From Anthoceros angustus (taxonomy: Eukaryota; Plantae; Anthocerotophyta), in contig MU008165.1 of assembly GCA_010909165.1 (NCBI GenBank), forward strand, positions 868,001 through 932,000: a stretch of 64,000 bases of DNA, read 5' to 3'. Under the pieces are notes generated by a model. That model saw only the letters and a list, made by a program, of their open reading frames with translations. It made no database searches and was not told the origin of the DNA. The position numbers and the translations under genes are program-made. Shown here piece by piece: positions 861-29,250 of this stretch; position 1 is the first letter of the stretch, and every line of letters begins with the position of its first letter.

Positions 861-888
861 ATACTCCTATTTATCAATCTTTAAAATT

Positions 889-1705: not shown

Positions 1706-2094
1706 AAGATAGTAATTTTATTACATAAGAACTTTTATTTGTATTATATATTTTTAATATAATGATTTTTATTTTAACTTTATTCATAATTTCATTAAAC
1801 CACTCTTGATTGCCTCTTTCTTGTGGAAAGTCTTCAAGCCATCTGGCGATCATGAAATTGATGTAGTGAAGCTAAGATTGGAGTATATCGCTATGTGTTT
1901 AGCTGAGTCTTGTTTTGGTCATTGTCATAGCATGGCATAATAGCATCGGACAATTTCTTCTTCTATAGCTACGCATATTATAGTTACTAAATCGCATGTT
2001 AGAATCTTGACGGGTTCGCAAACCCCGATTTCTGCTTGGCTCTAAGCGTGCTCAACGTGGGGCGACCACACCAAGGGTGTGCGAATGTTTTGAA

Positions 2095-3780
2095 TCATGA
2101 GCCGAGCAAGGCACGTGGCACGAGGCGGAGTGTGAAGATGGCGTGCGAGAAGGAAAATTGGCATTTAGGGGTGGGCTGTTGAAGTCCCACCTTGCGGCCA
2201 GTCACGGAGAGAACTCCTAGCAGGCAATGGACACCGTTGCTGAAAGAAGCCATCACACAAGAAAAGGGGCGGTGGTAGGCTTTAGCACAGCCTTGATGAA
2301 CTGGAGAAATCCTTGCCCATGGCCCCGTGAGTCTCGATGGCAAGGGGATGAAGGCGTGGCCCTTCTTGCATGGGCGAGTACTTGTGAGCGTTCGTTGTCG
2401 CGCATTTCTCCGCCACCCAACCTGGAGGGTTGATGATGACGTGCTTGCAGACGGTGTCCCGGGCAAGGTCTGCGGCCACATCCACAAGGTCCCCCTCGGA
2501 GAGAACATGGGCGTGGCGACGGCGTGATGCGTAATGCGCCGCCCGGGCTGAGAGCGAGGGGCTACGGCGGCAGGTCTAAACAGAGCAGGCCAAAGGTTAG
2601 ACCAAACCAAAGTGAACCTCATCGCGGTAGAAAAGAAGCCGGTGCGACTCAAATACCTTGATGCAAGGTCGGGCTAGAAGCCATGAACTGCTCCTTCCCG
2701 AGCAAGGCGGAGGCGAAGCTGGTCAAGGAATGGAGGAATCGAGGAGCAAAGCCAACGCGTGCCCATACAAGTTTCTTCTCATGGAGGAGGCCAAAAGCCG
2801 GCCCGTCCAGAGACGAGGGCGAATCGGCGACCGCCTAGCCTCGAGGATAGGACACCCTAGCCAATCTTAAGGACAAGCATGCAGGAAGGCGCCTCCTCGG
2901 CCGACGAAGGCCTTGAAGATGCGGTAATCCCAGATTAGGAAATGGGAGGCCTAGATGCGGGTTGAGAGGACCAAGCTCAAGCGTCGTGCGGATGCCTTGC
3001 GGCGCACTAAGGGCCGCTCTTGGCGAGCAATTGCATTCATGTGAGCACTTCCTCAGGACTGACAAGTCTAATATGCAAATACCAATTTGTAACTGGAGAA
3101 ATCCTTGCCCATGGCCCCGTGAGTCTCGATGGCAAGGGGATGAAGGCGTGGCCCTTCTTGCATGGGCGAGTACTTGTGAGCGTTCGTTGTCGCATCTCTC
3201 CGCCACCCAACGAGGGTTGATGATGGCGATGCTTGGGCGGTGTCCGGGCAAGGTGTACGGCCACATCCACAAACTCCCTCGTCGAGAACATGGCGTGTGA
3301 GCGTGATCGTAGCAATGCGCGCCGCCCGGTGGAGAGCGAGGGGCTACGGAGTCTAAAGAGAGCAAAGGTTGGACCAAACCGGGCGGAACCTCATCGGTAG
3401 AAAAGAAGCCGGTCAGAAATACCTTGATGCAAGGTCGGGCTAGAATGAACCTCCCTTCCAGCAAGGCGGAGGCGAGCTCGGTGGTCAAGGAATGGAGGAA
3501 TCGAGGAGCAAAGCCGTGCGTGCCCATACAAGTTTCTTCTCATGGAGGAGGCCAAAAGCCCACGGGTCCAGACGAGGCGAATGCGGCGATGACATTAGCC
3601 TCGGAGGATAGGACACCCTAGCCAATCTTAAGGACAAGCATGCAGGGGCGCCCTCCTCGGCCGAGGCGAAGGCCTTGAAGATGCGGTAATCCCAGGATTA
3701 GGGGAGGCCTAGATGCGGGTTGAGGACCAAGCTCAAGCGTCGTGCGGATGCCTTGCGGCGCACTCTAAGGCGCTCTTGTG
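2095..3780 (-). mobile_element. CRE-like non-LTR retrotransposon 3' fragment (RLE endonuclease region), with internal duplication ~3091-3860
   Basis: Merged frames read GAGSWLLARP..F..AMRFRLGL, GGRIATHHAVRDAMF, VDVAV, HKY, FIPLAIETHGAMG, RQRVSIALQ. No RT core is present. Confidence 0.75.
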
Positions 3781-4189
3781 AGGTAAGCAATTGCATTCAT
3801 GTGAGCACTTATCGGACAACCAAGCAAAACAAGTCTAATATGCAAATACCAATTTGTAACACTAGGAGAGTAGCAGACGTTGTGGTTTTCCTCCCACACT
3901 CTCCCCAGAACAACACGCAAATTCGCACGTGGCTCTGAGTGATAGCTTTGGCCTCCTCACAACTCTCTTATATGTGAGGAGTTATGATGTGAGCTTGTCC
4001 GGCTGTGAGTCTATATAGATATACTAGGCCTTGGCATGGCATATTCCTAAGATATCCTATTGGCGTGATATGGAAATATCCAAAGAATACACCATAATAT
4101 GCAGGAATATGCTAAAGCATATAACTGTTTATCCACTTAGTTATTGCTAACCGTGTTTAATTGCGATGTTGATGCTTAATTAACATAAC

Positions 4190-4440
4190 CACTTCATATT
4201 AATTAATTAATACTAATAACTTACTTAATGATAAGTCATTAGATTAATTAATGCTAGATATAAATGAATTTAACCACTATATTAATTAATTAATACTAAT
4301 AACTTACTTAATGATAGTCATTAGATTAATTAATTGCTAGATATAAATGAATTTAACCACTTATTAATTAATTAATACTAATTACTTACTTAATGATAAG
4401 TCATTAGATTAATTAATGCTAGATATAAATGAATTTAACA
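4190..4440 (+). promoter_or_regulatory. AT-rich ~84-bp repeat x3, putative promoter; also at ~7741-7993, 13311-13554, 17481-17724, 27682-27931, 32169-32401, 37493-37740 and 59281-59449 (x2)
   Basis: Each copy has TAATTAATTA, TAATGA-taag-TCATTA and TATAAAT. The last TATAAAT lies ~50 bp before the putative ATG at 4473. Promoter role is inferred. Confidence 0.6.
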
Positions 4441-4639
4441 TAAATCAGCAGCACTATCTCTTTCTAAAATAGATGCCAATATACCAATCGACACATGCTG
4501 AAAATTTACCAATTTACTAGTTGCCAATATGAAGCTGGTAGTTTCTCATGGGGTATAAATGGGCGACTTAAAATCAAAGGACTCGAACTTCAAATCTTGT
4601 TATCCATTCTTCTTGCATGTAACTTTTCATAATTCTATG

Positions 4640-5250
4640 ATCTACTTGTTAAGGTTTGTTCAATGAAGATTGATGTTCTCCTTACGGAGGGATGAGTTTA
4701 TGCATGTATATTCCTATGTGTGCTAACGAATTCATTCTCTCTACTTGTTCTCTCTGTGTTTCCCTAGAGGGCACGTAAATTACCCAAAGGCGAGACCTAA
4801 ACCGAAAGATTTCCTCCGCCATGAACTTAAAAATCTCACATTCTTGCAAATATCTTTTAATAATCGTGTGATCTACTTGTTAAGGTATGTTCCATGAAGA
4901 TTCATGTTCTCCTTTATAGAGGATGGTGTATGCATGTGTATTACGTGTTAATTCATTCTTTCTACTTGTTCCCTGAGGTTTCCCTAGAGGGCACGTAAAT
5001 TACCCAAAGGGACCTAAACCGAAAGATTTCCTCCGCCATGAACTTAAAAATCTCACATTCTTGCAAATATCTTTTAATAATCGTGTGATCTACTGTTGTT
5101 AAGGTTTGTTCAATGAAGATTCATGTTCTCCTTTAGAGGATGAGTTTATGCATGTATGTTCCTATGTGTGCTAACGAATTCATTCTCTACTTGTTCTCTC
5201 TGAGTTTCCTAGAGGCACGTAAATTACCCAAAGGCGGACCTAAACCGAAA
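4640..5250 (+). repeat. ~230-bp modules x3, unit 2
   Basis: A-B-A pattern. Confidence 0.9.
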
Positions 5251-5280
5251 GATACTCCTATTTATCAATCTTTTAAAATT

Positions 5281-6060
5281 ATGGAGTCCACAATGAAAAT
5301 TGAAGTGAGAATGTTTGAAGAAAGATACATATGTGGAAAATGTATCGGTGAAGGAGGTTTTCAAAGTCTATGAATGCTATGAATATCGGAAAGATATTTC
5401 GCAAAATTATGAAAAATCTAAAGACATAAATGATGCAATATGGAGAGAGATCAACACTCTTGATCTCTTAAAATATTCTCATATTATTAACACAAAAGTG
5501 TTCATGAGGATATTGAACATATTTATATTGTGATGGAGCTATGTACCAATGGTACACTAAAGGATGAACTAAAAAAGGGGAGCTTATTGTGAAGAGGATG
5601 CAAAAATACTTATGTTTAACCTAATGGAGGCAATCAATTTTGCCAGGCATAATGTTATGCATCGCGATTTGAAACCGCTAATATACTATTACTTAGTCTC
5701 AAAGTCATACTAGGACTTTGGTTTATCTTTCCATGTCTCCAAAACGAACATGAATTATTATACAAGAGGGAACCCCATGTTACATGGCTCGGAGGTATGT
5801 CAGGAGAGATGTAAACATAAGCTATCTTAGCCGATTTGGGCGCAGGAGTCATTTTGCCATGAAGTTTTAACCGGAAATCGTCCTTATATAGGATATGAGT
5901 TCGCAAAAAAGAATGGATAACTCAATTGGACCTAGATGAGTGGCCCAACATGTCACCAAGTGAAAGATCTACTACACTCAATGTTACATTTAGAACAAGA
6001 ATTAGAGGATCTTGACAAGTTCTAAACCATTCTTGGTTTTGCTCGCTATCTTATATATGA
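5281..6060 (+). CDS. Ser/Thr protein kinase domain, unit 2 (many indels)
   Basis: Copy of the kinase exon. ORF 5140-5373 runs from the last repeat module into MESTMKIEVRMFEERY. Confidence 0.85.
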
Positions 6061-6442
6061 AGATAGTAATTTTATTATATAAGAACTTTTATTTGTATTA
6101 TATATTTTAATATAATGATTTTTATTTTAACTTTATTCATAACTTCATTAAACCACTCTTCAGTGCCTCTTTGTTGTGAAAAAGTCTTCAAGCCATGCAA
6201 GCGGCAGTCATGAAATTGATGTAGTGAAGCTGAGATTGGAGTATATCGCTACGTGTTTAGCCTGTGAGTGCTGTTTTGGTCATTGTCATAGCATGGCATA
6301 ATAGCATCGGACAATTTCTTCTTCTATAGCTACGCATATTATAGTTACTAAATCGCATGTTAGAATCTTGTGGGTTCTACCACAGCTCTAAGTGCTCAAC
6401 GTGCTTGGGACGACCACACCAAGGGTGTGCGAATGTTTTGAA

Positions 6443-7345
6443 TCATGAGCGAGCAAGGTAACGTGGCACGAGGCGGGTGTGAAGATGGCGGCGCGAGAAG
6501 GAAAATTGGCATTTAGGGAAAGCACTATTGTTGAAGTCCCACCTGCGTACCGTCCAAGGAGAACTCCTAACTGCGGCAATGGACACCCGTGCTGAAAAAG
6601 CCATCACACAAGAAAAGGCGGGCTGGTAGGCTTTATACAGCCTTGATGAACTGGAGAAATCCTTGCCCATGGCCCCGTGAGTCTCGATGGCAAGGGGATG
6701 AAGGCGTGGCCCTTCTTGCATGGGCGAGTACTTGTGAACGCTTAGTTGTCGCGCTCCGCCACCCAACCGGAGGGTTGATGATGGCGTGCTTGCAGACGTG
6801 TCCGCAAGGTGCATGCGGCCACATCCACGTCCCCTCGCGTCGAGAACATGGCGTCGCGGACGGTGATCACGTCAATGCGCCCGCCTGGAGAGCGAGGGCT
6901 CCCAGTGTCTAAAGAGAGCGCCAAAGGTTGGACCAAACCAGGCGGAACCTCATCGTAGAAAAGAAGCCGGTGCGACTCGAATACCTTGATGCAAGGTCGG
7001 GCTAGAAGCCATGAACCCCTCCCTTCCCGAGCAAGAGCGGAGGCGAGCTCGGAGTCAAGGAATGGAGGAATCGAGGAGCAAAGCCGGCCGTGCCCATACA
7101 AGTTTCTTCTCATGGAGGCCAAAAGCCACCGGCCGTCCCAGAGAACGAGACGATGCGGCGAGCCCGCCTCGGAGGATAGGACACCCTAGCCAATCTTGGA
7201 CAAGCATGCAAGGAAGGCGCCTCCTCGCCCGAGACGGGCCTTGAAGATGCGTAATCCCTGTGGATTAGGAAATGGAGGCCTAGGCGGGTTGAGAGGATGC
7301 TCAAGCGTCGTGCGATGCCTTGCAGACTCTAAGGGCCGCTCTTGA
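6443..7345 (-). mobile_element. CRE-like RLE fragment, unit 2
   Basis: Same motifs as unit 1. Confidence 0.75.
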
Positions 7346-8189
7346 CGGGTAAGCAATTGCATTCATGTGAGCACTTCCTCAACGGACAACCAAGCAAAAC
7401 AAGTCTAATATGCAAATACCAATTTGTAACACTAGGAGTAGCTTCGGTTGTGGTTTTTCCTCCCACTCTGAACACAAATTCGGCATGGCTCGGGTGATAG
7501 CTTTGGCCTCCTCACAACTCTCTTGCATTGCATATGTAGAGGACAAGTTATGATGTGAGCGTCCTGTGAAAGGTCTATATGATATCTTGCCTTGGCATTG
7601 GTATTCCTAAGATATCCTATTGCCCTATGAATATCCAAAGAATACACCATAATATGCAAGGAATATGCTAAAGCATATAACTTGTGTTTATCCACTTAGT
7701 TATTGCTAACCGTGTTTAATCGATGCTTAATTAACATAACCACTTATATTAATTAATTAATACTAATAACTTACTTAATGATAAGTCATTAGATTAATTA
7801 ATGCTAGATATAAATGAATTTAACCACTTATATTAATTAATTAATACTAATAACTTACTTAATGATAAGTCATTAGATTAATTAATGCTAGATATAAATG
7901 AATTTAACCACTTCATATTAATTAATTAATACTAATTACTTACTTAATGATAAGTCATTAGATTAATTAATGCTAGATATAAATGAATTTAACATAAATC
8001 AGCAGCACTATCTCTTTCTAAAATAGATGCCAATATATGCACACATGTTGAAAATTTACCAATTTACTAGTTGCCAATATGAAGCCCGGTAGTTTCTCAT
8101 GGGTATAAATGAGACTTAAATCGAATCTCTGACTCGAACTTGAAATCTTGTTATCCATTCTTCTTGCATGTAACTTTTCATAATTCTAT

Positions 8190-8800
8190 GATCTACGGTT
8201 GTTAAGGTTTGTTCAATGAAGATTGATGTTCTCCTTTACGGAGGGATGAGTTTATGCATGTATATTCCTATGTGCTAATTCATTCTCTCTACTTGTTCTC
8301 TGGTTTCCCTAGAGGGCACGTAAATTACCCAAAGGAGACCTAAACCGAAAGATTTCCTCCGCCATGAACTTAAAAATCTCACATTCTTGCAAATATCTTT
8401 TAATAATCGTGTGATCTATTGTTAAGGTATGTTCCATGAAGATTCATGTTCTCCTTTATAGAGGGATGGGTGTATGCATGTGTATTCCGCGTTAACTAAT
8501 TCATTCTTTCTACTTGTTCCCTGTGTTTCCCTAGAGGGCACGAAATTACCCAAAGGGGACCTAAACCGAAAGATTTCCTCCGCCATGAACTTAAAAATCT
8601 CACATTCTTGCAAATATCTTTTAATAATCGTGTGATCTACGGTTGTTAAGGTTTGTTCAATGAAGATTCATGTTCTCCTTTGAGGGATGAGTTTATGCAT
8701 GTATGTTCCTATGTGTGCTAACGAATTCATTCTCTCTACTTGTTCTCTGAGTTTCCCTAGAGGGCACGTAAATTACCCAAAGGCGGACCTAAACCGAAGA
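8190..8800 (+). repeat. ~230-bp modules x3, unit 3
   Basis: A-B-A pattern. Confidence 0.9.
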
Positions 8801-8829
8801 AATACTCCCTTTATCAATCTTTTAAAATT

Positions 8830-9228
8830 ATGGAGTCCACAATGAAAATTGAAGTGAGAATGTTTGAAGAAAGATACATATGTGGAAAATGTATCGGTGA
8901 AGGAGGTTTTTCCAAAGTCTATGAATGCTATGACAAATACGGAAAGATATTTGCCTGCAAAATTATGAAAAATCTAAAGACATAAATGATGCAATATGTA
9001 GAGATCAACACTCTTGATCTCTTCCAAAATATTCTCATATTATTAACACAAAAGTGTTCATGAGGATATTGAACATATTTATATTGTGATGGAGCTATGT
9101 ACCAATGGTACACTAAAGGATGAACTAAAAAAGGGGAGCTTATTGTGAAGAGGATGCAAAATACTTATGTTTAACCTAATGGAGGCAATCAATTTTTGCC
9201 ACATAATGTTATGCATCGCGATTTGAAA
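8830..9228 (+). pseudogene. Truncated kinase copy (N-lobe to HRDLK), unit 3a
   Basis: Breaks at CGATTTGAAA|GATACATATG and restarts near the kinase 5' end, out of frame. Confidence 0.85.
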
Positions 9229-9960
9229 GATACATATGTGGAAAATGTATCGGTGAAGGAGGTTTTTCCAAAGTCTATGAATGCTATGACAAATATACGG
9301 ATATTTGCCTGCAAAATTATGAAAAATCTAAAGACATAAATGATGCAATATGTAGAGAGATCAACACTCTTCGATCTCTTCCAAAATATTCTCATATTAT
9401 TAACACAAAAGTGTTCATGAGGATATTGAACATATTTATATTGTGATGGAGCTATGTACCAATGGTACACTAAAGGATGAACTAAAAAAGGGGAGCTTAT
9501 TGTGAAGAGGATGCAAAATACTTATGTTTAACCTAATGGAGGCAATCAATTTTGCCACATATAATGTTATGCATCGCGATTTGAAACCAATATACTATTA
9601 CTTAGTAGCTCAAAGTCATACTAGCGGATTTGGTTTGTCATTCCATGTCTCCAAACGAACATGAATTATTATGCGGGGGCTGCAACATGTTACATGGCTC
9701 GGAGGTATTGAGTCAAGACGATGTAAACATAAGCTATACTTCAAAAGCCGATATTTGAGCAGAGTCATTTTGTATGAAGTTTTAACTGAAATCGCCCTTA
9801 TATAGGATATGAGTTGCGAGAAAAGAAGAATGGATAACTCAATTGGACCTAGATGAGTGGCCCAACATGTCACCGCGAAGTGAGATCTACTACACTCAAT
9901 GTTACATTTAGAACAAAATTAGAGGCAGGATCTTGTTCTAAACCATTCTTGGTTTTGCTA
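9225..9960 (+). pseudogene. Duplicated kinase copy 3b (lacks first ~14 codons)
   Basis: Kinase sequence ending TTGGTTTTGCTA, joined to TTTATCAATC upstream of the next copy. Confidence 0.8.
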
Positions 9961-9980
9961 TTTATCAATCTTTTAAAATT

Positions 9981-10758
9981 ATGGAGTCCACAATGAAAAT
10001 TGAAGTGAGAATGTTTGAAGAAAGATACATATGTGGAAAATGTATCGGTGAAGGAGGTTTTTCCAAAGTCTATGAATGCTATGACAAATATACGGATATT
10101 TGCCTGCAAAATTATGAAAAATCTAAAGACATAAATGATGCAATATGTAGAGAGATCAACACTCTTCGATCTCTTCCAAAATATTCTCATATTATTAACA
10201 CAAAAGTGTTCATGAGGATATTGAACATATTTATATTGTGATGGAGCTATGTACCAATGGTACACTAAAGGATGAACTAAAAAAGGGGAGCTTATTGTGA
10301 AGAGGATGCAAAATACTTATGTTTAACCTAATGGAGGCAATCAATTTTGCCACATATAATGTTATGCATCGCGATTTGAAACCAATATACTATTACTTAG
10401 TAGCTCAAAGTCATACTAGCGACTTTGGTTTGTCTTCCATGTCTCCAAAACGAACATGAATTATTATGCGGGGGCTGCAACATGTTACATGGCTCGGAGG
10501 TATTGAGTCAAGACGATGTAAACATAAGCTATACTTCAAAAGCCGATATTTGAGCGCAGAGTCATTTTGTATGAAGTTTTAACCGGAAATCGTCCTTATA
10601 TAGGATATGAGTTGCGAGAAAAGAAGAATGGATAACTCAATTGGACCTAGATGAGTGGCCCAACATGTCACCGCGAAGTGAGATCTACTACACTCAATGT
10701 TACATTTAGAACAAAATTAGAGGCAGGATCTTGTTCTAAACCATTCTTGGTTTTGCTA
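9981..10758 (+). CDS. Duplicated kinase copy 3c
   Basis: ORF 9981-10241 (MESTMK...GEGGFSKV); the rest of the domain follows with indels. Confidence 0.8.
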
Positions 10759-10777
10759 TTTATCAATCTTTAAAATT

Positions 10778-11572
10778 ATGGAGTCCACAATGAAATTGAA
10801 GTGAGAATGTTTGAAGAAAGATACATATGTGGAAAATGTATCGGTGAAGGAGGTTTTTCCAAAGTCTATGAATGCTATGACAAATATACGGATATTTGCC
10901 TGCAAAATTATGAAAAATCTAAAGACATAAATGATGCAATATGTAGAGAGATCAACACTCTTCGATCTCTTCCAAAATATTCTCATATTATTAACACAAA
11001 AGTGTTCATGAGGATATTGAACATATTTATATTGTGATGGAGCTATGTACCAATGGTACACTAAAGGATGAACTAAAAAAGGGGAGCTTATTGTGAAGAG
11101 GATGCAAAATACTTATGTTTAACCTAATGGAGGCAATCAATTTTGCCACATAATGTTATGCATCGCGATTTGAAACCAATATACTATTATTTAGCCGCCT
11201 CAAAGTCATACTAGCGACTTTGGTTTGTCTGCTCCATGTCTCCAAACGAACATGAATTGTGTGGGAGCTGCAGGGAACCCCATGTTACATGGCTCCGGAG
11301 GTATTGGAGTCAAGACGATGTAAACATAAGCTATACTTCAAAAGCCGATATTTGAGCGCAGAGTCATTTTGTATGAAGTTTTAACGAAATCGCCCTTATA
11401 TAGGATATGAGTTCATAAAAAAGAAGAATGGATAACTCAATTGGACCTAGATGAGTGGCCCAACATGTCACAGTGAAAGATCTACTACACTCAATGTTAC
11501 ATTTAGAACAAGAGTGTAGACCGATGACAAGTTCTAAACCATTCTTGGTTTTGCTCGCTATCTTATATATGA
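10778..11572 (+). CDS. Kinase copy 3d with normal 3' end
   Basis: Contains GAAGTPCYMAPEVL and the normal TCTTATATATGA stop. Confidence 0.85.
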
Positions 11573-11961
11573 AGATAGTAATTTTATTACATAAGAACTT
11601 TTATTTGTATTATATATTTTTAATATAATGATTTTTATTTTAACTTTATTCATAATTTCATTAAACCACTCTTGATTATCTTTCTTGTGGAAAAGTCTTC
11701 AAGCCATGCAAGCGGCATCTTGAAATTGATGTAGTGAAGCTAAGATTGAGTATATCGCTATGTGTTTAGCTGAGTCTGCTTTTGGTCATTGTCATAGCAT
11801 GGCATAATAGCATCGGACAATTTCTTCTTCTATAGCTACGCATATTATAGTTACTAAATCGCATGTTAGAATCTTGACGGGTTCATAACACGATTTCTGT
11901 GGCTCTAAGCGGGCTCAACGTGCTTAGGACGACCACACCAAGGGTGTGCGAATGTTTTGAA

Positions 11962-12878
11962 TCATGAGCCGAGCAAGAACGTGGCTGAGGCGAGTGTGAA
12001 GATGGCGGCGAGAAGGAAAATTGGCATTTAGGGGTGAACGGCTATTGTTGAAGTCCCACCTTGGCCGTCACGTGAGAGAACTCCTAGCTGCAGGGCAATG
12101 GACACCCGTTGCCCGAAGAAGCCATCACACAAGAAAAGGGCGTGGTAGGCTTTTACAGCCTTGATGAACTGGAGAAATCCTTGCCCATGGCCCCGTGAGT
12201 CTCGATGGCAAGGGGATGAAGGCGTGGCCCTTCTTGCATGGGCGAGTACTTGTGAACTCGTTGTCGCGCATCTCTCCGCCACCCAACCCGGAGGGTTGAT
12301 GGCGATGACAGACGGTGTCGCAAGGTGCTACGGCCACATCCACGAAACCGTCCCCCTCGGCCGAGAACATGGCGTCGCGGGCGGCGTGATGCGTAGCAAT
12401 GCGCCCGCCACCGGAGAGCGAGGGCTACGGGTCTAAAGAGAGCAGCCAAAGGTTGGACCAAACCCAGCGGAACCTCATCGCGGTAGAAAAAAGCCACGAC
12501 TGAAATACCTTGATGCAAGGTCGGGCTAGAAGCCATGAACTGCTCCTTCCCGAGCAAGAGCGGAGGCGAGCTCGAGGTCAAGGAATGGAGGAATCGAGGA
12601 GCAAAGCCGCGTGCCCATACAAGTTTCTTCTCATGGAGGGAGGCCAAAGCCCCCGGCCGTCCCGCAGAGCGACGAGACGTGGCGCCCTAGCCTCGAGGAT
12701 AGGACACCCCTAGCCAATCTTAAGGACAAGCATGCAGGAAGGCGCCTCCTCGACGCCCGAGGGCGAAGGCCTTGAAGATGCGGTAATCCCTGTGGATTAG
12801 GAAATGGGAGGCCTAGATGCGGGTTGAGAGGACCAAGCTGCGTGCGGATGCCAGGCGCCTCTAAGGGCCGCTCTTGAG
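11962..12878 (-). mobile_element. CRE-like RLE fragment, unit 3
   Basis: Same motifs as unit 1. Confidence 0.75.
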
Positions 12879-13754
12879 GTAAGCAATTGCATTCATGTGA
12901 GCACTTCCTCAACGGACAACCAAGCAAAACAAGTCTAATATGCAAATACCAATTTGTAACACTAGGAGAGGTAGAGCTTGTGGTTTTCCACACTCTCCCA
13001 CGAGAACAACACGCAAATTCGGCACATGGCTCCTGAGTGATAGCTTTGGCCTCCTCACAACTCTCTTGCATTGCATATGTAGAGGACAAGTTATGATGTG
13101 AGCTTGTCCTGTGAAAGGGTCTATATAGATATACTAGGCCTTGGCATTGGCATATTCCTAAGATATCCTATTGGCATCAGCATATGCCGGAAATATCCAA
13201 AGAGTACACCATAATATGCAAGGAATATGCTAAAGCATATAACTTGTGTTTATCCACTTAGTTATTGCTAACCGTGTTTAATTAATGAATCGATGCTTAA
13301 TTAACATAACCACTTTATTAATTAATTACTAATTACTTAATGATAAGTCATTAGATTAATTAATGCTAGATATAAATGAATTTAACCACTTCATATTAAT
13401 TAATTAATACTAATAACTTACTTAATGATAGTCATTAGATTAATTAATGCTAGATATAAATGAATTTAACCACTTATATTAATTAATTAATACTAATTAC
13501 TTACTTAATGATAAGTCATTAGATTAATTAATGCTAGATATAAATGAATTTAACATAAATCAAGCACTATCTCTTTCTAAAATAGATGCCAATATACCAA
13601 TCGACACAGTAGTTGAAAATTTACCAATTTACTAGTTGCCAATATGAAGCCTGTAGTTTCTCATGGGGTATAAATGGGAGACTTAAATCGAACTCCCGAC
13701 TGAACTTCAAATCTTGTTATCCATTCTTCTTGCATGTAACTTTTCATAATTCTA

Positions 13755-14840
13755 TGATCTACGGTTGTTAAGGTTTGTTCAATGAAGATTGATGTTCTCC
13801 TTTACGGAGGGATGAGTTTATGCATGTATATTCCTATGTGTGCTAACTAATTCATTCTCTCTACTTGTTCTCTCTGAGTTTCCCTAGAGGGCACGAATTA
13901 CCCAAAGGCGAGACCTAAACCGAAAGATTTCCTCCGCCATGAACTTAAAAATCTCACATTCTTGCAAATATCTTTTAATAATCGTGATCTACTTTGGGTA
14001 TGTTCCATGAAGATTCATGTTCTCCTTTATAGAGGGATGGGTGTATGCATGTGTATTCCAAGCGTGTTAATTCATTCTTTCTACTTGTTCCCCTGGTTTC
14101 CTAGAGGGCACGTAAATTACCCAAAGGGTAAACCGAAAGATTTCCTCCGCACCATGAACTTAAAAATCTCACATTCTTGCAAATATCTTTTAATAATCGT
14201 GTGATCTACGGTTGTTAAGGTTTGTTCAATGAAGATTCATGTTCTCCTTTACGGAGGGATGAGTTTATGCATGTATATTCCTATGTGTGCTAACGAATTC
14301 ATTCTCTCTACTTGTTCTCTACAGGTTTCCCTAGAGGGCACGTAAATTACCCAAAGGGCGAGACCTAAACCGAAAGATTCCCTCCGCACCATGAACTTAA
14401 AAATCTCACATTCTTGCAAATATCTTTTAATAATCGTGTGATCTACGGTTGTTAAGGTATGTTCCATGAAGATTCATGTTCTCCTTTATAGAGGGATGGG
14501 TGTATGCATGTGTATTCCGGCGCGTGTTAACGAATTCATTCTTTCTACTTGTTCCCTACAGGTTTCCCTAGAGGGCACGTAAATTACCCAAAGGGCGAGA
14601 CCTAAACCGAAAGATTTCCTCCGCACCATGAACTTAAAAATCTCACATTCTTGCAAATATCTTTTAATAATCGTGTGATCTACTTGTTAAGGTTTGTTCA
14701 ATGAAGATTCATGTTCTCCTTTATAGAGGGATGAGTTTATGCATGTATGTTCCTATGTGCTAACGAATTCATTCTCTCTACTTGTTCCTGCAGTTTCCCT
14801 AGAGGCACGTAAATTACCCAAAGGCGGACCTAAACCGAAG
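13755..14840 (+). repeat. ~230-bp modules x5, unit 4
   Basis: A-B-A-B-A; example intron 14457-14561, GTATGT...GTTAAC...CCCTACAG. Confidence 0.9.
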
Positions 14841-14870
14841 AAATACTCCTATTTATCAATCTTTAAAATT

Positions 14871-15683
14871 ATGGAGTCCACAATGAAATTGAAGTGAGAA
14901 TGTTTGAAGAAAGATACATATGTGGAAAATGTATCGGTGAAGGAGGTTTTTCCAAAGTCTATGAATGCTATGACAAATATACGGAAAGATATTTGCCTGC
15001 AAAATTATGAAAAATCTAAAGACATAAATGATGCAATATGTAGAGAGATCAACACTCTTGATCTCTTCCAAAATATTCTCATATTATTAACACAAAAGTG
15101 TTCATGAGGATATTGAACATATTTATATTGTGATGGAGCTATGTACCAATGGTACACTAAAGGATGAACTAAAAAAGGGGAGCTTATTGTGAAGAGGATG
15201 CAAAAATACTTATGTTTAACCTAATGGAGGCAATCAATTTTGCCATGCATAATGTTATGCATCGCGATTTGAAACCGCTAATATACTATTACTTAGCCGT
15301 CTCAAAGTCATACTAGCAGACTTTGGTTTGTGCTCCATGTCTCCAAACGAACATGAATTATTATGCAGGAGTCAGGAACCCCATGTTACATGGCTCGGAG
15401 GTATTGGAGTCAAGACGATGTAAACATAAGCTATACTTCAAAAGCCGATATTTGGAGCGCAGAGTCATTTTGTATGAAGTTTTAACCGAAATCGTCCTTA
15501 TATAGGATATGAGTTCGACGTAAAAAGAAGAATGGATAACTCAATTGGACCTAGATGAGTGGCCCAACATGTCACACGAAGTGAAAGATCTACTACACTC
15601 AATGTTACATTTAGAACAAGAGTGTAGACCTGGACAAGAAAGTTCTAAACCATTCTTGGTTTTGCTCGCTATCTTATATATGA
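14871..15683 (+). CDS. Ser/Thr protein kinase domain, unit 4
   Basis: Near-identical copy of the kinase exon. Confidence 0.9.
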
Positions 15684-16056
15684 AAGATAGTAATTTTATT
15701 ATATAAGAACTTTTATTTGTATTATATATTTTAATATAATGATTTTTATTTTAACTTTATTCATAATTTCATTAAACCACTCTTGATTACCTCTTTCTTG
15801 TGGAAAGTCTTCAAGCCATGCAAGCGTATGAAATTGATGTAGTGAAGCTAAGATTGGAGTATATCGCTATGTGTTTAGCTGAGTGCTTTTGGTCATTGTC
15901 ATAGCATGGCATAATAGCATCGGGACAATTTCTTCTTCTATAGCTACGCATATTATAGTTACTAAATCGCATGTTAGAATCTTGACGGGTTCGCAAACCC
16001 CGCGGCTCTCAACGTGCTTTGGGACGACCACACCAAGGGTGTGCGAATGTTTTGAA

Positions 16057-17040
16057 TCATGAGCCGAGCAAGGCGAACGTGGCCTCGAGGCGGAGTGTGA
16101 AGATGGCGGCGAGAAGGAAAATTGGCATTTAGGGCTGGAAACGGCTATTGTTGAAGTCCCACCTTGCAGCGCCGTCCACAGGAGAGAACTCCTAGCCTGC
16201 AGGGCAATGGACACCCGTTGCCTGAAAGAAGCCATCACACAAGAAAAGGGGGCGGCTGTGGTAGGCTTTAGCACAGGCCTTGATGAACCTGGAGAAATCC
16301 TTGCCCATGGCCCCGTGAGTCTCGATGGCAAGGGGGATGAAGGCGTGGCCTTTCTTCCATGGGCGAGTACTTGTGAACGCTTGTTGTCGCATCTCTCCGC
16401 CACCCAACCCGGAGGGTTGATGATGGCGTGCTTTGCGGTGTCCCGCAAGGTCCGTACGGCCACATCCACAACGGAAACCGGTCCCCCTCGGTGCCGAGAA
16501 CATGGCGTCGGACGGCGTGATGCGTGTGATGCGCCCGCCGGAGAGCGAGGGCTACGGCAGTCTAAAGAGAGCGAGCCAAAGGTTGGACCAAACCCAAAGT
16601 GAACCTCATCGTAGAAAAGAAGCCGGTGCGACTAAATACCTTGATGCAAGGTCGGGCTAGAAGCCATGAACCTGCTCCCTTTCCCGAGCAAGAGCGGAGG
16701 CGAGCTCGAGTTGGTCAAGGAATGGAGGAATCCAGGAGCAGAGCCAGCTGCGTGCCCATACTGCTTCTCATGGAGGGAGGCCAGAAGCCCACGCAGCCCG
16801 TCCGCAGAGAACGAGGACGAATGCGGCATGACCGCCCTAGCCTCAGAGGATAGGACACCCCTAGCCAATCTTAAGGACAAGCATGCAAGGGGAAGGCGCC
16901 CTCCTCGACGCCCGAGACGAAGGCCTTCAAGATGCGGTAATCCTCAGGGGATTAGGAAATGAGAGGCCTAGATGCGGGTTGAGAGGACCAAGCTCAAGCG
17001 TCGTGCCGGATGCCGGCGCTCTAAGGGCCGCTCTTCGAGG
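16057..17040 (-). mobile_element. CRE-like RLE fragment, unit 4
   Basis: ORF 16192-16503 has GHAFIPLAIETHGAMGKDFSRFIK. Confidence 0.78.
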
Positions 17041-17942
17041 TAAGCAATTGCATTCATGTGAGCACTTCCTCAACGGACAACCAAGCAAAACAAGTCTAAT
17101 ATGCAAATACCAATTTGTAACACTGGAGAGAGTAGCTTGCACGTTGTGGTTTTCCTCCCACACTCCCCACGAGAACAACACGCAAATGGCGCACATGGCT
17201 CGGAGTGATAGCTTTGGCCTCCTCACAACTCTCTTGCATTGCATATGTAGAGGACAAGGACAAGTTATGATGTGAGCTTGTCCTTTGTGAAAGGGTCTAT
17301 ATAGATATACTAGGCCTTGGCATTGGCATATTCCTAAGATATCCTATTGGCATCGGCATCGGAAATATCCAAAGAATACACCATAATATGCAAGGAATAT
17401 GCTAAAGCATATAACTTGTGTTTATCCACTTAGTTATTGCTAACCGTGTTTAATTAATGTCGATGCTTAATTAACATAACCACTATTAATTAATTAATAC
17501 TAATTACTTAATGATAAGTCATTAGATTAATTAATGCTAGATATAAATGAATTTAACCACTTATATTAATTAATTAATACTAATAACTTACTTAATGATA
17601 GGTCATTAGATTAATTAATGCTAGATATAAATGAATTTAACCACTTCATTAATTAATTAATACTAATTACTTACTTAATGATAAGTCATTAGATTAATTA
17701 ATGCTAGATATAAATGAATTTAACATAAATCAGCAGCACTATCTCTTTCTAAAATAGATGCCAATATACCAATCGACACACAGCCGTTGAAAATTTACCA
17801 ATTTACTAGTTGCCAATATGAAGCCTGGTAGTTTCTCATGGGGTATAAATGGGCGAGACTTAAATCGAAACTGCTGCTCCGGACTCTGAACTTCGAAATC
17901 TTGTTATCCATTCTTCTTGCATGTAACTTTTCATAATTCTAT

Positions 17943-18416
17943 GATCTACGGTTGTTAAGGTTTGTTCAATGAAGATTGATGTTCTCCTTTACGGAGGATG
18001 AGTTTATGCATGTATATTCCTATGTGTGTGCAACGAATTCATTCTCTACTTGTTCTCTCTGAGTTTCTAGAGACGTAAATTACCCAAAGGCGAGACCTAA
18101 ACCGAAAGATTTCCTCCGCATGAACTTAAAAATCTCACATTCTTGCAAATATCTTTTAATAATCGTGTGATCTACGGTTGTTAAGGTATGTTCCATGAAG
18201 ATTCATGTTCTCCTTTATAGAGGGATGGGTGTATGCATGTGTATTCCTGCGTTAACGAATTCATTCTTTCTACTTGTTCCCTCAGTTTCCTAGAGGGCAC
18301 GTAAATTACCCAAAGGGCGAGACCTAAACCGAAAGATTTCCTCCGCACCATGAACTTAAAAATCTCACATTCTTGCAAATATCTTTTAATAATCGTGTGA
18401 TCTACGGTTGTTAAGG
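17943..18416 (+). repeat. ~230-bp modules x2, unit 5 (cut by insertion)
   Basis: Ends at TTAAGG|TGTGGAAC. Confidence 0.9.
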
Positions 18417-20340
18417 TGTGGAACGAAGCATTTTGGTCACCCCAGACACGGCAGGGGAGACTGACGCGTAGATTGGGTAGTAGTTGTTCAGGCAGGTAGG
18501 TAGTAGGTAGGTCGATAGAAAGGTAGGAAGATGGTAGGACGTCCGAGGGGAGTTCGGGACTTAACTGAGTCGGCGTACCCGTAGGAGGTTCGATCCGGTA
18601 GGAAGTATGGGTAGATAGAAGCATATATAGGCATGATAGGCTCCAGAAAGTTCCTTGGACCATGGGAAGTAGGAATATTTGGGGATAAGAAGTTCCTTGG
18701 CCTTCGAATTATTTAGATTCCGCTTGGCTATATATGCCAAAAAGGGCTAGTTAAGTTGTAGATAGAAAATAGCTACAGGAGTTTTGAACCGGACACGTGG
18801 CAGCCATCAGGGAGGAGCACCATTAAGGCAGATTTGCATGTACCGCAAACTCGCTGTGGTTTTGAACGGGCGCCAGCGGCCCGCAGCGGGCGCCGAGGGA
18901 GTAAGTGGAGTTGCGTCAAGGAGGAAGGCAGAAGGAGCGGCGCCTTCGGGCCGACAGCGCGCGCAGTCGGAGGGAGCGCGAACTCAAGGCGGAGGGCGCA
19001 AGCGAGGAGCCGAGCGATAAGGAGCAGCGGCTGAGGGCGGCTGACCGAGCTCACTGGGCGTGAGCGCAGGAGAAACGCTGGAGAGGAGTTCTGAGGGGTT
19101 CGCACGGCGCGGCGAGTGAAGGTGCTCGAGCGAGGAGCAATTGTTGGAGAGGCGCTGGCGGGAAGAGCCGCCAGCGTGAGATCAAGTGGTAGCGAAACTG
19201 GAGGGAGATTGAAGGAGCCGAGGCCACCTCTTGGCGGTGGTGTGAGGCGACCTGAGGAGCAAAGTCTTCCTTGCGTTATCTCACCCAAACCACCACTTTT
19301 GTTTCACTACTCTCTTAGCCTGATAGATTACTCCAATCTCTCCAATTTTGCTATCCTTGTGTGTGCTGTGCGCAAGATGGTGAAGGTAGTAAGGACAGGA
19401 ACGGGGTACTCACGGGAGGAAACCTCCGCCACACCCACAAGGGAAAAGGTAAGAAACACCCAATTCCCCGAGTTCGAGTGTAGGCCGCCCAAATTTCACC
19501 TCGAGATTTGATGCGCCAGCTACGCTACCGAGATGAAGATGGAATGGTCATTTGGTACTGGCACTTTAGCAGCCCCGCCTTTGGTTCGGGGAGTGTGCGC
19601 GATTTAATGAGAGTGACCAAGGCGGACGGCCAATTTCCGGAGGATGCATAAATCAAGTCATCCCGGGATGTGGAAGGTACGGCATTTCCGTGGATACGAT
19701 TTGATACCAAGCCCACAAGGGAGGGATCATTCAGCTCAGCCTCCAAGAATCGATCCCTGAGGAGGTTATGAGCATGTTCTACGACCAAAGGAGGAAGTAT
19801 GGTCGCAAGGCAATGGTCGGAGGATCTCTTTGTTCAAGGAGCGGAGAAGTGGAATTTATTCGCCAAGATATGGCTGGGACCAACGCAGGAAGACGACTGG
19901 AAATTCCCATTTAATGATGATGTATGAGATGTCTGGAAGTTGGTGGATTGGGCCACCATTCAGTATGAACAAAGCGTTGCGCATCGAACCATTTGGTGAT
20001 GGAGGGAGCAGAATCGCTTTTGTCTCTACCTACCTCAGACACCTATATCAGGGAGGAGGTTCTTACACCGAGACTGGAAGAAGCCAAGATAGAAGCTACT
20101 CTGCAGGGCGGAGGGGAGCCATCTGCCCAGAGGATGAAGAGATGAGGCCCCGGCAAGAGACCGCCACGCCCGCGAACCAACATGAGGCCTCGTGATCGTG
20201 AACCCAACAAGAGAAAGGGAAAAAGGCTATAGAAGCACTCTCCACGGAGGAAGGAGGAAAGGATACGAGACCACCTACCAGCCGGGTTGAGGATTGGTAG
20301 GCCGACAACACCAAAGGGTAGGGAGGAACCCCTACCAGAG

Positions 20341-20594
20341 TGAAGGATCGTGGGGCAACCATGTCGGTGGAAGGAGGAGAGGAGAGGAGGAGGCAAGAGT
20401 AGCTCTCTCACATTGAGATGAGGCTTGAGGGTATTTATACCTCCAATAGGCTCCTAGGAAGCTCCACAAGAAGCTCCTAGAAGGAGCACAAGAAGCTTCC
20501 TAGTGATTAGCTTAAGCTAAACTAATGATACTTAATCGACACCTAACTTAGACTAAGTGTATTAGTCTAAGTATTGGGCTTTAATACCCTTACA
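20341..20594 (-). repeat. Copia 3' LTR
   Basis: Direct repeat of 25121-25360; adjacent to the PPT. Confidence 0.93.
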
Positions 20595-20633
20595 ACCTCC
20601 CACTTAAAGGCCAATTTACCTTAGGAGAATGGA

Positions 20634-23600
20634 CTATCTCATGCCCATCGTTGTCCGAGCTTGTGCAAATTGCTGTAGAGAGTCCCTTGGTAAGAATATC
20701 TAGGTTCGCCGGTGAACCTTGACAAGTTGTACCCTCTTGTCGTCCAACACCTCTCGAATGAAGTGATACTTCACATCCACATGTTTAGTCTTCGCATGAA
20801 ACACTGGATTCTTTGCCAATTGATAGCACTCTATCACAATGCAACACGCTCAACCTTGATCCCCAAGTCTCCCACTAAACGAGCAAGCCATATGGCTTCC
20901 TTGCAAGCCTCGCTGCAACATACTGGCCTCCGTGGTAGATAGCGAATGCACGATCGCAAACGAGATCGCCATGAGATCGCCTCCAAAGGCACGTGAAGAC
21001 ATAACTCGATGTGGACCTCTTTGTCCATATCCTCGTGATAATCGATCTGTACCCAACCACACATGCATCTTCACTACCAAAACATATGCACAAAGCTTTT
21101 GTACCATTCGATACCTCATAACTTTTTATCGCCTCCCAATGCTTCTTGCCGGTTTGACATAAACTCGCTAACCACTCCCACCGCAAAGGCAATGTCGACG
21201 TAGCAATCATTGCATACATCAAACTCCCTACATGATGAGTATGGGACCTTCTCCATTTCTTTGTCCTCCTCGTAGCTTGGGCAATCCGCTTGAAAGTTTC
21301 ACATATGGAGGCAATGGAGTACCCAATGGCTTCCCTTCTCCATGTTGAAACGTTGAAGCACCTCGTTAATGTATTCCGTCGAGACAAATAAAGCACGCTA
21401 TGTCTGCTCCGAAATACGCATGCCAAGTATATGGCTCGCCTCCCAAGTCTGCTATTTCAAAGTGAGCATTCAACTTTGACTTCAACAAATCTCATCAAGA
21501 TCGCTCCAAAGAATTAGCATATCATCCACATAGAGGATCAAAATGAGCAAGCTTTGATCCTTAGCTTTTTCAGATAGAGGCAATGATCCTCATCGCCACG
21601 CTTGTAGCCTTGAGAAAGCATAAATGAGTGGAACTTGTGATACCACCGGTGCCTGCTTCAAACCATAAAGGCTCTTCCTCAACCCGCACACCGATGCTCT
21701 TGCCCTTCTCAACAAAACCTTCCGTTGCATGTAGACGCCCTCTTGAAGGTCACCATGCAAGAATGCCGCCTTGACATCCATCCGCATAAGTTCCATATCA
21801 TCCTCGCAACCAAAGCAAGAACACATCGCAGTTGTCATTTTGACTCATCGGTGAGAAAATCTCATCAAAGTCAATGCCGTTGTTGCTTGAAACCCTTAGC
21901 AACAACATCGGGCCTTGTACTTTTTTGCCATCAAGCGGTATGACCTTCATCTTGTACACCCATTTGCACCAGAGTGCCTTCTTATCCTTAGGCAACGAAC
22001 CAACTCCCAAGTTTGGTTCTTTAATTCATTGCATGGCCTTCTCCCACTTGTTGCCGACATGAGCCTCTTTGTAAGAAGAGGGTTCCCACAACTCCGCAAG
22101 ATAACATAATCCAGATGGATCATACCGCCGAGGTCGTGTAATCCCGCCTCGACCTACGCACCTCTATAGGAGCTTGTTCGACTCTTGGTTCATCTCTTGG
22201 AGGAATGTGCTCGCACCACTATCAACTGCGATGATCATGTCCATCTTCTTGGAAGATCACCCTTCGCACCTCCACTTGGAGTAGGCTTCTGCATCTTGTT
22301 CTCATTGAAGAACACGTTAGTACGAACAACCTTTCTAGCCTCGGATCCCACAAACGGTATCCCATCTCACCAGAATCACCATAGCCAAGAAAAATACATT
22401 CTTGGACTTAGGTGCCAACTTGTCCCGAAACTCTTTTGGAACATGGCAAGATGCCTCATACCAAACACTCGCAGATGCTTGTAGGATGGTTTCTTTCCGA
22501 CCATAGCTCCTCCGAACTCGCTCATCAATTCCTTATTAGGAGATCTCATAATAAGATGAACTGAGACACCGCTCGCCCAAAACCCATTAGGCAATCCGAG
22601 TTTGACAACAAACCACGATCCTCTCCGAATGGTTCTGCTCATCCGCTCACCACACCATTTTGTGGAGGAGATACGCATAATTCTCTTTTGATTCCTTGGA
22701 ATCACGAATGACCGAAAGCTGAAACATACTCGCCACCATTATCTCTTAGACACTTCAATCGGTGGCGACCGATTCTCTAAGGGTGACAAATTTAAAAACA
22801 CCGTAACTTCATCCTTTTCCTCAAAGGATAAACCCACACCTTGCGAGAAATCATCTATGAAAGTGACAAAATAAGAGGCACCGCCTAATGATGCAGAGGC
22901 ATAGGTCCACATACATCAGTGAACCAACTCAAGAGGTTTACTTCTACTTTTACCTCGTGTTCGATGTGATGATTTTGTCTGCTTCCCATATAAACAAAGT
23001 GCTCACATCGAGAGATCGAGAAGTTAAGAACAGGATATAACCGTAACGAGATAAAACCTTCATTCCCTTCTCGAGACATATGTCCTAACCGCAATGCCAC
23101 AAGGAAACATTTGGCTGCTCACCACATGATCACATGATCTTTGATGTGTTTACTCAAGTGAGTACAAAGTGCCACACTCGATCCACGAGCTAACACAAGA
23201 GAACCTTTGGAGATCTTCCAAGAGTGATCCCCAAAACCAGAAGTGGTAAGATCATCCAACCGTCTCGCGCTAATCATGCTCTTTGTCAACTTCGAACATG
23301 CCTAACGCCCTTCAAAGATGAATGAAGATCCGTTGTCAAACTTGAGTTGCACATCACCTACGCCCGCGATCCGCATGCATAGTTATTTCCAAGCCTAACG
23401 CATCCTTTCCTTGTAGCATCATACGTGTTAAACCACTCTCTATGCGGAGTAACATGGAAAGATGCACCGAGTCAATTATCCAATTGCGTAATAAATGACT
23501 ATCCACTCCGTTAATTGTGCAAGATTCAAGTAAGAAGAGATAAGGACATCTCCCCTCAATGTAGTTTAACTCTTCCAACTCGATGCATTTAAGTCGCCTT

Positions 23601-24328
23601 GTCCGCTTCTTCTTTCCTTGGTCCTTTTGAACTTCTCTCTTTTGAAGTGACCCTTTGTGACAATAGTGACACTCCACATTCTTGTTACGACTACGAGATT
23701 TGCTACGAGAAAAGCTTCGTTGCTTCCCTTCGCAGGGACCTCCCTCTCACTATGAGGGCACCGGAACCTTTGGAAGGTTCCATGTTTTTCCTGCTCACCT
23801 CGCCAATGTGCTACCTTCTACATTTACAATGGTAAGACCACTAGTAATTACTCGAGTCGCATTTAAAGGTATCCCAACCTCCGTAATGTGACCAATGAAA
23901 CATAGCTCTCACTAACTGGGAACGTGATACCTTGAGATGAGAGTCGGCTGAAAATGGTATTGAAATCATTCGAATGATCGGACATCCTCGTCCCTTCCTT
24001 CATCTTCAAGTCCACCACCGTTTCAACCAATACACCGAGAAGCCGCACTTTGCTTCTCATACAGTCACATACCGCCACATCCGTAACTCGTGGTCTTATC
24101 TTTCACATTGAAGTACACTGTTTTTGACAATGTTAGCATGATAGTAGATCTAGCAAGCTCATCCAGTCCCGCCACTCATCCCGAGTCATACTATCCGGTT
24201 TGACGCCTAACAACTTTATGGGCTTGATCTTCGCACTAGAACATTATACACTTGTTCTTTCCGTAACGGAAGTTAGTACCATCTAACTTCTCGATATTGA
24301 ACATGACGCTCGACGATGAAGACATCAT
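20634..24328 (-). CDS. Copia gag-pol polyprotein (frameshifted as assembled)
   Basis: IEKLDGTNF gag start, CHYCHK knuckle, WIIDS protease, DVCGP integrase, MDVKAAFLHG and LYVDDML RT, KHVDVKYHFIRE RNase H end. Confidence 0.92.
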
Positions 24329-25120
24329 GACTCAAAAATCGATACAGATTAAACACTCAACTCGCCTTGTTAGAAAAGTCAAAGAAGAAAGCGCCACCGA
24401 GGCCCGTATTTTGCCGCTGACTATTCCACCGAGTAATCCGCCAATCGCTCGGCGAATTTTCGCCACCGCCCCGCTTGCACTCCGCGGCTGCCGCAGCCGC
24501 ACTCCCCGCCGCCGCCAGCACGCCCGCGCGCCGCGGCCAACGCGCCGCGCGCGCACACGCCGGCACCGCCACGCCGCCCGCGCCGGCCAGCTGCCCGGCC
24601 GCCTCAAGGCCGGCTCGCGCCGGGCCAAGGCCCGGCTGGCGCCGCTGGGCTCTGCGCTGGCGCCGGCGCGCGCCTGCGCCGGGGCGCTGGCCCCTGGCGG
24701 CCGGCCGCGGCGCGCGGCCAAGGCTGCGGGCGGGCGCTGGGCGCTGCGGCCGGCCGGGCGCTCGCCTGCGGCTCGGCGCTCGCCAAGGCCTGGCGCGCGC
24801 CTGGGCGGCCGGGGCGGCTGCGGGGCTCGGCGCGCGGGGGGCGCCTGGCGGCGCGGGGGGCTCAAGGCCGCGCCCGCGCTGGCGCCAAGGCTCGCCGGCC
24901 GGCCGCGCCAAGGCTGGCACGCCCGCGGCTCGCTGCTGCCTCGCGCCGCGGCCGCGCTGCCGCCCGCGGCCGCCTGCCGACGGCCTCCGCCTGCGCCGCC
25001 GCGCCAAGGTCGCGCTTTGCCTCCACGGCTCATCCGCCGCTCCGCGGGCGCTCGCAGCCGCGATCCGATCACCTGCATTTTAGCATCACAACACACACCA
25101 AACCATGGCTCGATACCGCT

Positions 25121-25360
25121 TGAAGGATCGGCCATGCCGGGTGGAAAGAGGAGAGGAGAGGAGGAGGCAAGAGTAGCTCTCTCACATTGAGATGAGGCTT
25201 GAGGGTATTTATACCTCCAATAGCTCTAGGAAGCTCCACAAGAAGCTCCTAGGAAGGAGCACAAGAAGCTTCCTAGTGATTAGCTTAAGCTAAGCTAATG
25301 ATACTTAATCGACACCTAACTTAGACTAAGTGTATTAGTCTAAGTATATTGGGCTTTACA
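25121..25360 (-). repeat. Copia 5' LTR
   Basis: Direct repeat; adjacent to the PBS. Confidence 0.9.
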
Positions 25361-26803
25361 CACCTGCTGTGTAGGACCTGTGAAGACGGAGGACCCACGG
25401 CAAGAGCTTTACTCCTACCAAAGAAGTAGTAACTTGTTAGCCCAATGGAGGCAGTGACGAGAAGAACGCCGAGGAACGCAGTGACCTACGACAGGAGGAG
25501 CAAGAGGAAGTGTTCTGAGAATGGCATCCTACAGGGTAGTTGCCGAGTCAAGGAAGTGGGCGCAGGATCTATGGACGCCCTAGTGGACCGTGGTCAGAGG
25601 TGGCCAAGTTCGGCCGAACTTCGAGACCTACCAAAGGAGCCGGAGGATGCCGAGAAGAAATTGAGAGGAGCTCAAAACCACCTCCGAGAAGCAACACTGC
25701 TAGATCCGCCAAAGAGCGACAGATGACCACCAAGTTGGTGAATGTGGGAAATGATTGACTGTGTCTTAGGACAGAGGCAAAATCAGCCAAGAGGGCCGAG
25801 GAGTTGGAAACCGCCAGAAGGAGGCAAGGAAAGTTGGAAGCTACCCAGCAAGGGTAGGACACATCGAACGCAGCAAGGAGGAGGCAAAGATTCATACTAG
25901 CAAGGCCTGACCTTGAAGACGAGAAGGACCTCCTACGAAGAAGTTAGTTGCCATGGAGCAACGGAAGGAGCATTACAAGGAAAATACGGCGCCTTGGTGA
26001 AGGAACGAAGGATGGGACAATGTGACTAAGGGTCACAAAGAGGAGCTCAGACACGAGAGAACTTTTGGAGCAAAGAACGAAGAAGGCCGACGACCTTACC
26101 CACGCCTTATGAAACGGAGGCAAGGAACCGCCGAAGGAGGTTTTGATGGCCCAACGATCTTTGGAGGGTCTTCGTCATTCGAGGGAGGCGGGCGGCGGCC
26201 ACGCCATAGTGAAAGCATGGCGATGGAAGCCATGGAGAAAGATAAGGAGATTGGGAGGCTTGCCACAGGTTGGAGGAGGCGGTAGTGGAGAAAGAGGCCG
26301 CATTGGTAGGAGTGACAAATCGGGCCGGGTGGGGCAGTCGTCATCCCACTAAGGGTCCGCATCATGGACGCACAAAGAAGGAGAGTGGTAGGGTGGCGAC
26401 CTACTACAACAACCTCCTAAGCGATTGAGGCGCTACGGTGAGGAAGAGGCGAAAGCAGACCTCACTTGTTACGCCAAGTGGAATGGCAACCACGGAGGTG
26501 AAACTTTGAGTTGGTACAAGGAAAGCGGTGGGTGGACATAGCCGAACGAGCGAGTCAAGAAGCACCTCTGGCGACGCCTGGGAACCTCCAGGGGCAGTGG
26601 AGCTATCAAGCGGGGAGGAAGAGGCGATGGTAGGATGGTACCTACCAAAGTTCCTACTCGGTAGGAGGCGGAAGAGGAGGAGGTGACCGGAAGGAAGGGT
26701 ACCTCCGGTCTCAACCAGTGTGAGGAAGGTACCCCATAGCAAGATCGAAGCAGGAGGTAGGAGGCACCGCCTACCAAGAAGGCGAGGAGTGGGGAGGAAC
26801 CTC

Positions 26804-27055
26804 GAGGATGAGCAGTAGGAGGAATGGAACCTCCTACCACGGTGGAAGACCTACAGTGAGGGGGCGGCGTGGCGGTGCTACCGGGAGTCACAGAGAAGAC
26901 TCCTGAGGTGGGCAAGGCTAAGCGACCCATCGAGGATGAACGAGTAGGAGGAATGGAACCTCCTACCACAGAGGAAGACCTACCACCGAGGGGCCGACGA
27001 GGCTACCCATAGTCCTCGAGAAGACTGAGGTGGGCAAGGCTAAGCGACCCATCAA
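26804..27055 (+). repeat. ~128-bp tandem duplication in the outer element
   Basis: AGTAGGAGGAATGGAACCTCCTACCAC and GAGGTGGGCAAGGCTAAGCGACCCATC each occur twice. Confidence 0.8.
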
Positions 27056-29220: not shown

Positions 29221-29250
29221 AAATACTCCTATTTATCAATCTTTAAAATT

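Follow-up and report, generated by a model that had tools for sequence, protein, structure and literature searches.

Introner elements are many near-identical short introns inserted at unrelated sites. ORF162 and M2D3.5 of the Marchantia V (Y) chromosome are multicopy genes. Among plant kinases, PPCK (PEP-carboxylase kinase) represents the minimal type, with ~280 aa, no regulatory tail and an activity that is set by expression. In Ectocarpus, the repeat exons of ROCO/TPR-type genes are phase-0 and code for LRR or TPR units; they are backed by ESTs and show diversifying selection (PMC3341825). ORF162 and M2D3.5 of Marchantia are embedded in repeats (PMC9261002), and the P2 chromatin class of Anthoceros comprises short genes with CG and CHG methylation that often overlap transposons (PMC10952607).

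Here, we describe a tandem head-to-tail array of nine units of ~4.4 kb each in a window of 64,000 nt, the window being the whole stretch of DNA that was analysed (Table 1). Within a unit, three AT-rich hairpin repeats of 84 bp come before the first exon, which is followed by ~237-bp modules, the intronless kinase and a GC-rich remnant; the kinase is missing from unit 5, and three transposon insertions interrupt the array. Two hairpins are predicted per copy of the 84-bp repeat (27693-27777 folded; z = -4.5), and all 8/8 first exons contain a TATA-like TATAAAT (13669-13675 in the unit of Table 1). Database queries were made with unit copies outside 13586-15683, each piece apart. The GC-rich remnant had no match in Pfam, one whole unit had none in Rfam, and no description of this locus was found in the literature. 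The kinase copies are 0.3% apart at clean sites, so the array is young or has been homogenised; nine such similar units in head-to-tail order correspond to what is called a young gene array in the case of ampliconic genes of sex or accessory chromosomes. The reading we favour, at roughly even confidence, is that of a young tandem kinase array, probably silenced, with a copy-variable multi-intron leader. Each unit would be a copy of one transcription unit in which the TATA-like site is followed by a 5´ leader of several exons and by one coding exon, the latter encoding a 278-aa stand-alone CAMK-group kinase translated from its own start codon.

Table 1. Coordinates of the array and of the predicted features of one unit, given as positions in the window.
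Feature	Position	Strand	Remarks
Nine-unit array	1..64000	+	Kinase ATGs near 889, 5281, 8830, 14871, 29251, 34903, 38600, 61568
Three AT-rich 84-bp hairpin repeats	13317..13554	.	5´ of first exon
First exon region	13656..13772	+	Diverged copy of repeat exon
Intron, type A1	13773..13878	+	End approximate (error hot spot)
Repeat exon 1	13879..13997	+	Copy rich in deletions
Intron, type B	13998..14096	+	Exon side of donor degenerate as read; end approximate
Repeat exon 2	14097..14219	+	
Intron, type A	14220..14324	+	Best-read copy, 105 nt
Repeat exon 3	14325..14456	+	Full-length, 132 nt; stops in 3/3 frames
Upstream ORF in repeat exon 3	14391-14441	+	16 codons
Intron, type B	14457..14561	+	Best-read copy, 105 nt
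Repeat exon 4	14562..14691	+	
Upstream ORF in repeat exon 4	14628-14678	+	
Last intron, type A2	14692..14793	+	End approximate
Last exon, start	14794..14870	+	~55 nt of repeat exon fused to sequence preceding kinase ATG
CAMK-group kinase domain	14871..15683	+	Intronless; frame-broken as assembled in this copy
GC-rich remnant	16000..17100	-	One per unit

Several additional features of the array deserve mention. A CACTA transposon of 8.4 kb (38815-47229) lies inside the kinase of unit 8 and has CACTA termini, a 3-bp target duplication (CAT) and pieces of Transposase_21 and DUF4218. A 9.6-kb element (48160-57766) between kinase and GC-rich remnant is bounded by terminal inverted repeats of 34 bp that match perfectly and by what looks like a 4-bp target duplication (AAAC); inside it lie a DUF7869 piece and GC-rich repeats. 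The third insertion (18418-27213) starts precisely where unit 5 has its third donor, takes the place of the kinase and includes a Copia element with LTRs at 20359-20583 and 25132-25358 (96% identical) and an RVT_2 piece. Nested partial duplications of the kinase exon with three ATG starts are found in unit 3 (8810-11572) and are either real or an artefact of assembly. Finally, 16 nt of the first exon (13716-13731) match the 3´ part of the kinase (15525-15540) exactly in inverted orientation, and this recurs across units; the match was reached in 0/3000 Markov shuffles but has E = 0.015 in the whole-unit comparison. The CACTA and Copia elements, together with the CHG pattern described below, are in line with a land plant; this plant is probably a hornwort.

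A preliminary description of this DNA read the ~230-bp repeat as a cassette of one ~105-bp intron and one ~130-bp exon, a make-up for which the sequence signals argue strongly. The donor pattern has 44 matches compared to 0.13 expected by chance, or 45 copies with the degenerate one at 13998, and a recount per unit agreed with the numbers given earlier (at least 4, 3, 3, 5, 2 in the cut unit, 5, 11, 3 and 9). Best-read introns are 105 nt long and carry, besides the donor, a branch motif (CTAAC/TTAAC), a tract that is 84% pyrimidine and free of AG, and a CAG end; the full-length exon has 132 nt. These signals in combination arise in 0.15% of Markov shuffles. They are the signals of spliceosomal U2 introns (GT donor, branch point, pyrimidine tract, YAG acceptor) and are kept in both of the intron types, A and B, for which splicing is predicted. 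The acceptor base is read as AGG or GGG in 13 copies and as AG alone in 14, and the three best-read acceptors are CAG/G (slash at the junction).

The two intron types, which the preliminary description did not distinguish, alternate to form a higher-order unit of 458 bp, such that simple units carry 3 or 5 introns and differ by steps of two modules. Subtypes of introns occupy fixed positions within the unit. The units with 11 and 9 donors (units 7 and 9) have a rearrangement in common with its breakpoint 24 nt into a B intron; the breakpoint jumps back into the first exon, and these units consequently have one acceptor fewer than donors. The leader may have grown by tandem duplication of an intron+exon block, with the diverged first exon as the trace of an old duplication and the A and B introns as that of a more recent one. 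In-register unequal exchange or slippage would then add or remove A-exon-B-exon pairs (3 vs 5 introns), the 9- and 11-donor units would derive from one inherited rearrangement, and the whole unit would have been amplified recently, after the leader had grown. That noisy long-read assembly is instead the main source of the variation in module number, the true units being more uniform, appears very unlikely: the individual copies do carry 2-9% error, but module number changes in step with the A/B alternation, one breakpoint is shared by units 7 and 9, which lie 27 kb apart and differ downstream of it, the intron subtypes keep their positions and the insertions are flanked by clean target-site duplications.

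The kinase could be rebuilt from variants observed in its 8 copies as a stop-free ORF of 278 aa that begins with its own ATG and contains the Gly loop, catalytic Lys, helix C Glu, HRD, DFG and APE motifs. In 19/23 variable segments the frame-correct variant is the longest observed, and no lesion is common to all 8 copies. The protein belongs to the CAMK group (Pkinase E 1.5e-31 on one piece) and aligns with a generic kinase over 266 residues (E 7e-54). Its closest solved structures are the catalytic domains of CDPK and CaMKII, and its best single-domain match is P0139. Identity as a CDPK was considered and rejected, as the junction and EF-hand domain are absent 3´ of the kinase; the rebuilt kinase has no EF-hands, and the ORF ends directly after the catalytic domain, with a stop at this place in 8/8 complete copies. 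Word, large protein and metagenome searches returned no relatives much above 50% identity and only generic kinases at ~30-52%. The start codon of the kinase is flanked by A at -3 and G at +4. The presence of an in-frame stop just before it hinges on a T-run that is read as four in 4/10 copies.

Since its frame is known, the kinase can serve as a ruler of assembly error. Compared to a reference composed of variants chosen among the eight copies, there are 243 deletions, 47 substitutions and 17 insertions, a deletion/insertion ratio that is partly built in because the reference favoured long variants; at several sites, the length is fixed independently by conserved kinase motifs and the frame. 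Errors per base amount to 0.125 at CG, 0.204 at CHG, 0.077 in homopolymers, 0.011 elsewhere and 0.002 at GpC controls, i.e. the assembly has dropped bases at CG, CHG and homopolymer sites. Such errors are characteristic of nanopore reads base-called over methylated cytosines. The pattern suggests that the array carried transposon-like CG and CHG methylation in the sequenced tissue, as read indirectly from errors in a window that holds no unmethylated control. Expressed genes in Anthoceros are without CHG methylation, a mark of transposons and of short transposon-associated genes (PMC10952607), and the array was therefore probably silent in the tissue that was sequenced. The locus also serves as a caution: in long-read assemblies, deletions driven by methylation can disrupt genuine genes and can equally give rise to spurious peptides.

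The latter point bears on the repeat exons, which the preliminary description took to encode a continuous ~44-aa peptide present in variable number at the N terminus of the kinases. The 34 exons contain 170 deletions and 4 insertions, and none is longer than the 132-nt version, for which the true bases were inferred at four hot spots (the acceptor end and the GGCGAG, CCGCACC and TACGG stretches). The length of this best-supported exon is indeed a multiple of three, but stops occur in 3/3 frames, whether the acceptor is CAG/G, CAG/T or the TAG ten bases downstream, and with CAG/G no frame stays open across the spliced junction. In the frame originally proposed, the stops at stake are a TAA just before the donor and one after the GGCGAGACC stretch. 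The peptide is open in 1/34 exon copies, there is no excess of synonymous changes in six frames on both strands, and no relatives were found in Pfam, in Atlas or in a word search that covers only proteins of similar length and whose blank result is accordingly weak. A single-sequence model predicts one helix for the peptide and, at pTM 0.38, is uninformative. The proposed run of the last module into the kinase (ORF 5140-5373) results from a 2-nt deletion in 1/8 copies, and the frame upstream of this join is not that of the proposed repeat. The first exon aligns over the whole length of the repeat exon and is an older copy of it. This agrees with its earlier interpretation as a diverged repeat; the changes called conservative, in contrast, include 0 synonymous among 6 changed codons in the block concerned. 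In the longest first-exon copy, the 43-nt block has the same length as in the long version, with stops at homologous places. Two other frames were discarded: a 72-codon minus-strand ORF present in each module, because its length is reached in 31% of shuffles and it has no Pfam match, and a frame read through the intron, because it meets a stop early in the exon.

It is nonetheless conceivable, if improbable, that each exon contributes 42-44 aa and is spliced in frame to the kinase to give a variable number of N-terminal repeats. The exon length near a multiple of three, the better conservation of exons than introns and one copy, after the intron at 4654, that is open end to end are all in line with this, as are the ambiguity of the acceptor base and the existence of combinations of observed variants that put the last exon in the kinase frame. 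It would require, however, that the true sequence is shorter than both the commonest and the longest readings at two hot spots or that a variant seen in 0/40 copies is the correct one. The latter is a five-letter variant before the donor, and its complete absence has a probability of at most 0.015 at calibrated rates; comparable sites in the kinase are fully read in 17-40% of copies. Together with the single open copy and the lack of synonymous signal and of relatives, this argues that the repeat exons are probably non-coding, and the fallback offered by the preliminary description, a multi-intron 5´ UTR, is the best fit to the data.

As leader exons, the modules would be untranslated into kinase. 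Each repeat exon contains one 16-codon upstream ORF, located in an error-free stretch, and transcripts would thus be predicted to have 2 to ~9 upstream ORFs, each followed by exon junctions. Longer leaders are expected to lower kinase output and to expose the transcript to nonsense-mediated decay. One intriguing, though unlikely, possibility is that the array is expressed at some stage, e.g. in sexual organs or spores, and that leader-module number serves as a dial for kinase dose, under selection and quick to change. Each module would then contribute one upstream ORF and one structured intron; a smaller share of the weight that we give to this idea goes to a version with coding repeats.

Sequence comparison of the modules gives some hints of constraint. 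A and B introns differ at 9/94 clear sites, whereas the exons that follow them differ at 0 of 128-130 (Fisher p ~3e-4, if sites are independent), a contrast that a single intron-confined gene-conversion tract could also produce. A hairpin is predicted at intron positions 34-90 (~14253-14309 in the best-read A intron; z -3.7 and -3.1 vs base shuffles) and sets the branch motif beside an internal loop; the exon RNA is unstructured (z ~ +1). In the one A/B comparison on which conservation of the hairpin is judged, and which involves one hot spot in B, 7/9 affected pairs are kept, in one case because both partners have changed, and the similarity of the two structures exceeds that of 99.4% of random placements. 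An alignment fold gave five one-sided changes and zero two-sided ones. Exon identity in spite of ~10% intron difference and retention of the hairpin stay outside our favoured explanation.

These observations also weigh on the alternative that the array is a selfish or neutral macrosatellite that was never expressed, the modules being an intron-derived satellite and the kinase a cargo too young to have decayed. We regard this as possible, if on the doubtful side. It would account for methylation-type errors that extend across the coding exon, for transposons in three units, including one within a kinase, and for the partial kinase duplications in unit 3, and a leader with 2 to ~9 upstream ORFs would make a poor mRNA. 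Against this stand the intact motifs of the kinase and the lack of any fixed lesion, the invariance of the exons next to diverged introns, and splice signals and an intron hairpin that have outlasted the divergence of A and B. If the kinase array is expressed after all, it offers a natural series of near-identical genes, set apart solely by how many leader introns and upstream ORFs they have, and with it a direct test of how these elements set protein output. For the present, the locus is chiefly a clear example of how a tandem repeat can derive from a gene, and it adds a case of a gene-bearing, apparently methylated macrosatellite in a probable hornwort.

A limited literature search found no published copy-variable leader of this type. 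The many near-identical short introns with a hairpin are reminiscent of introner elements, but here they are copied with the flanking exon inside one gene; an introner element was rejected for the reason that every intron copy in the window has the same flanking exon. The kinase shares its catalytic domain with the CDPK/CaMK group, is unlike CDPK in having no EF-hands, and is similar to PPCK in its ~280 aa and missing regulatory tail, a likeness of architecture. As in the P2 class of Anthoceros, a short gene appears to carry both CG and CHG methylation, in our case deduced from sequencing errors. ORF162 and M2D3.5 of Marchantia are likewise bryophyte genes within repetitive DNA, but the cargo of the present array is a kinase with an internally repeated leader. 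Shared with the Ectocarpus genes (PMC3341825) are the repeated introns and exons beside a signalling domain and the tandem families whose members vary in exon number; unlike in Ectocarpus, the exons of the present array are nearly identical to one another, gave no domain match (Pfam, word search, Atlas) and most likely contain stops in every frame. The array thus resembles the repeat-exon genes of Ectocarpus in its layout and is, in its workings, more like an ampliconic bryophyte gene array.
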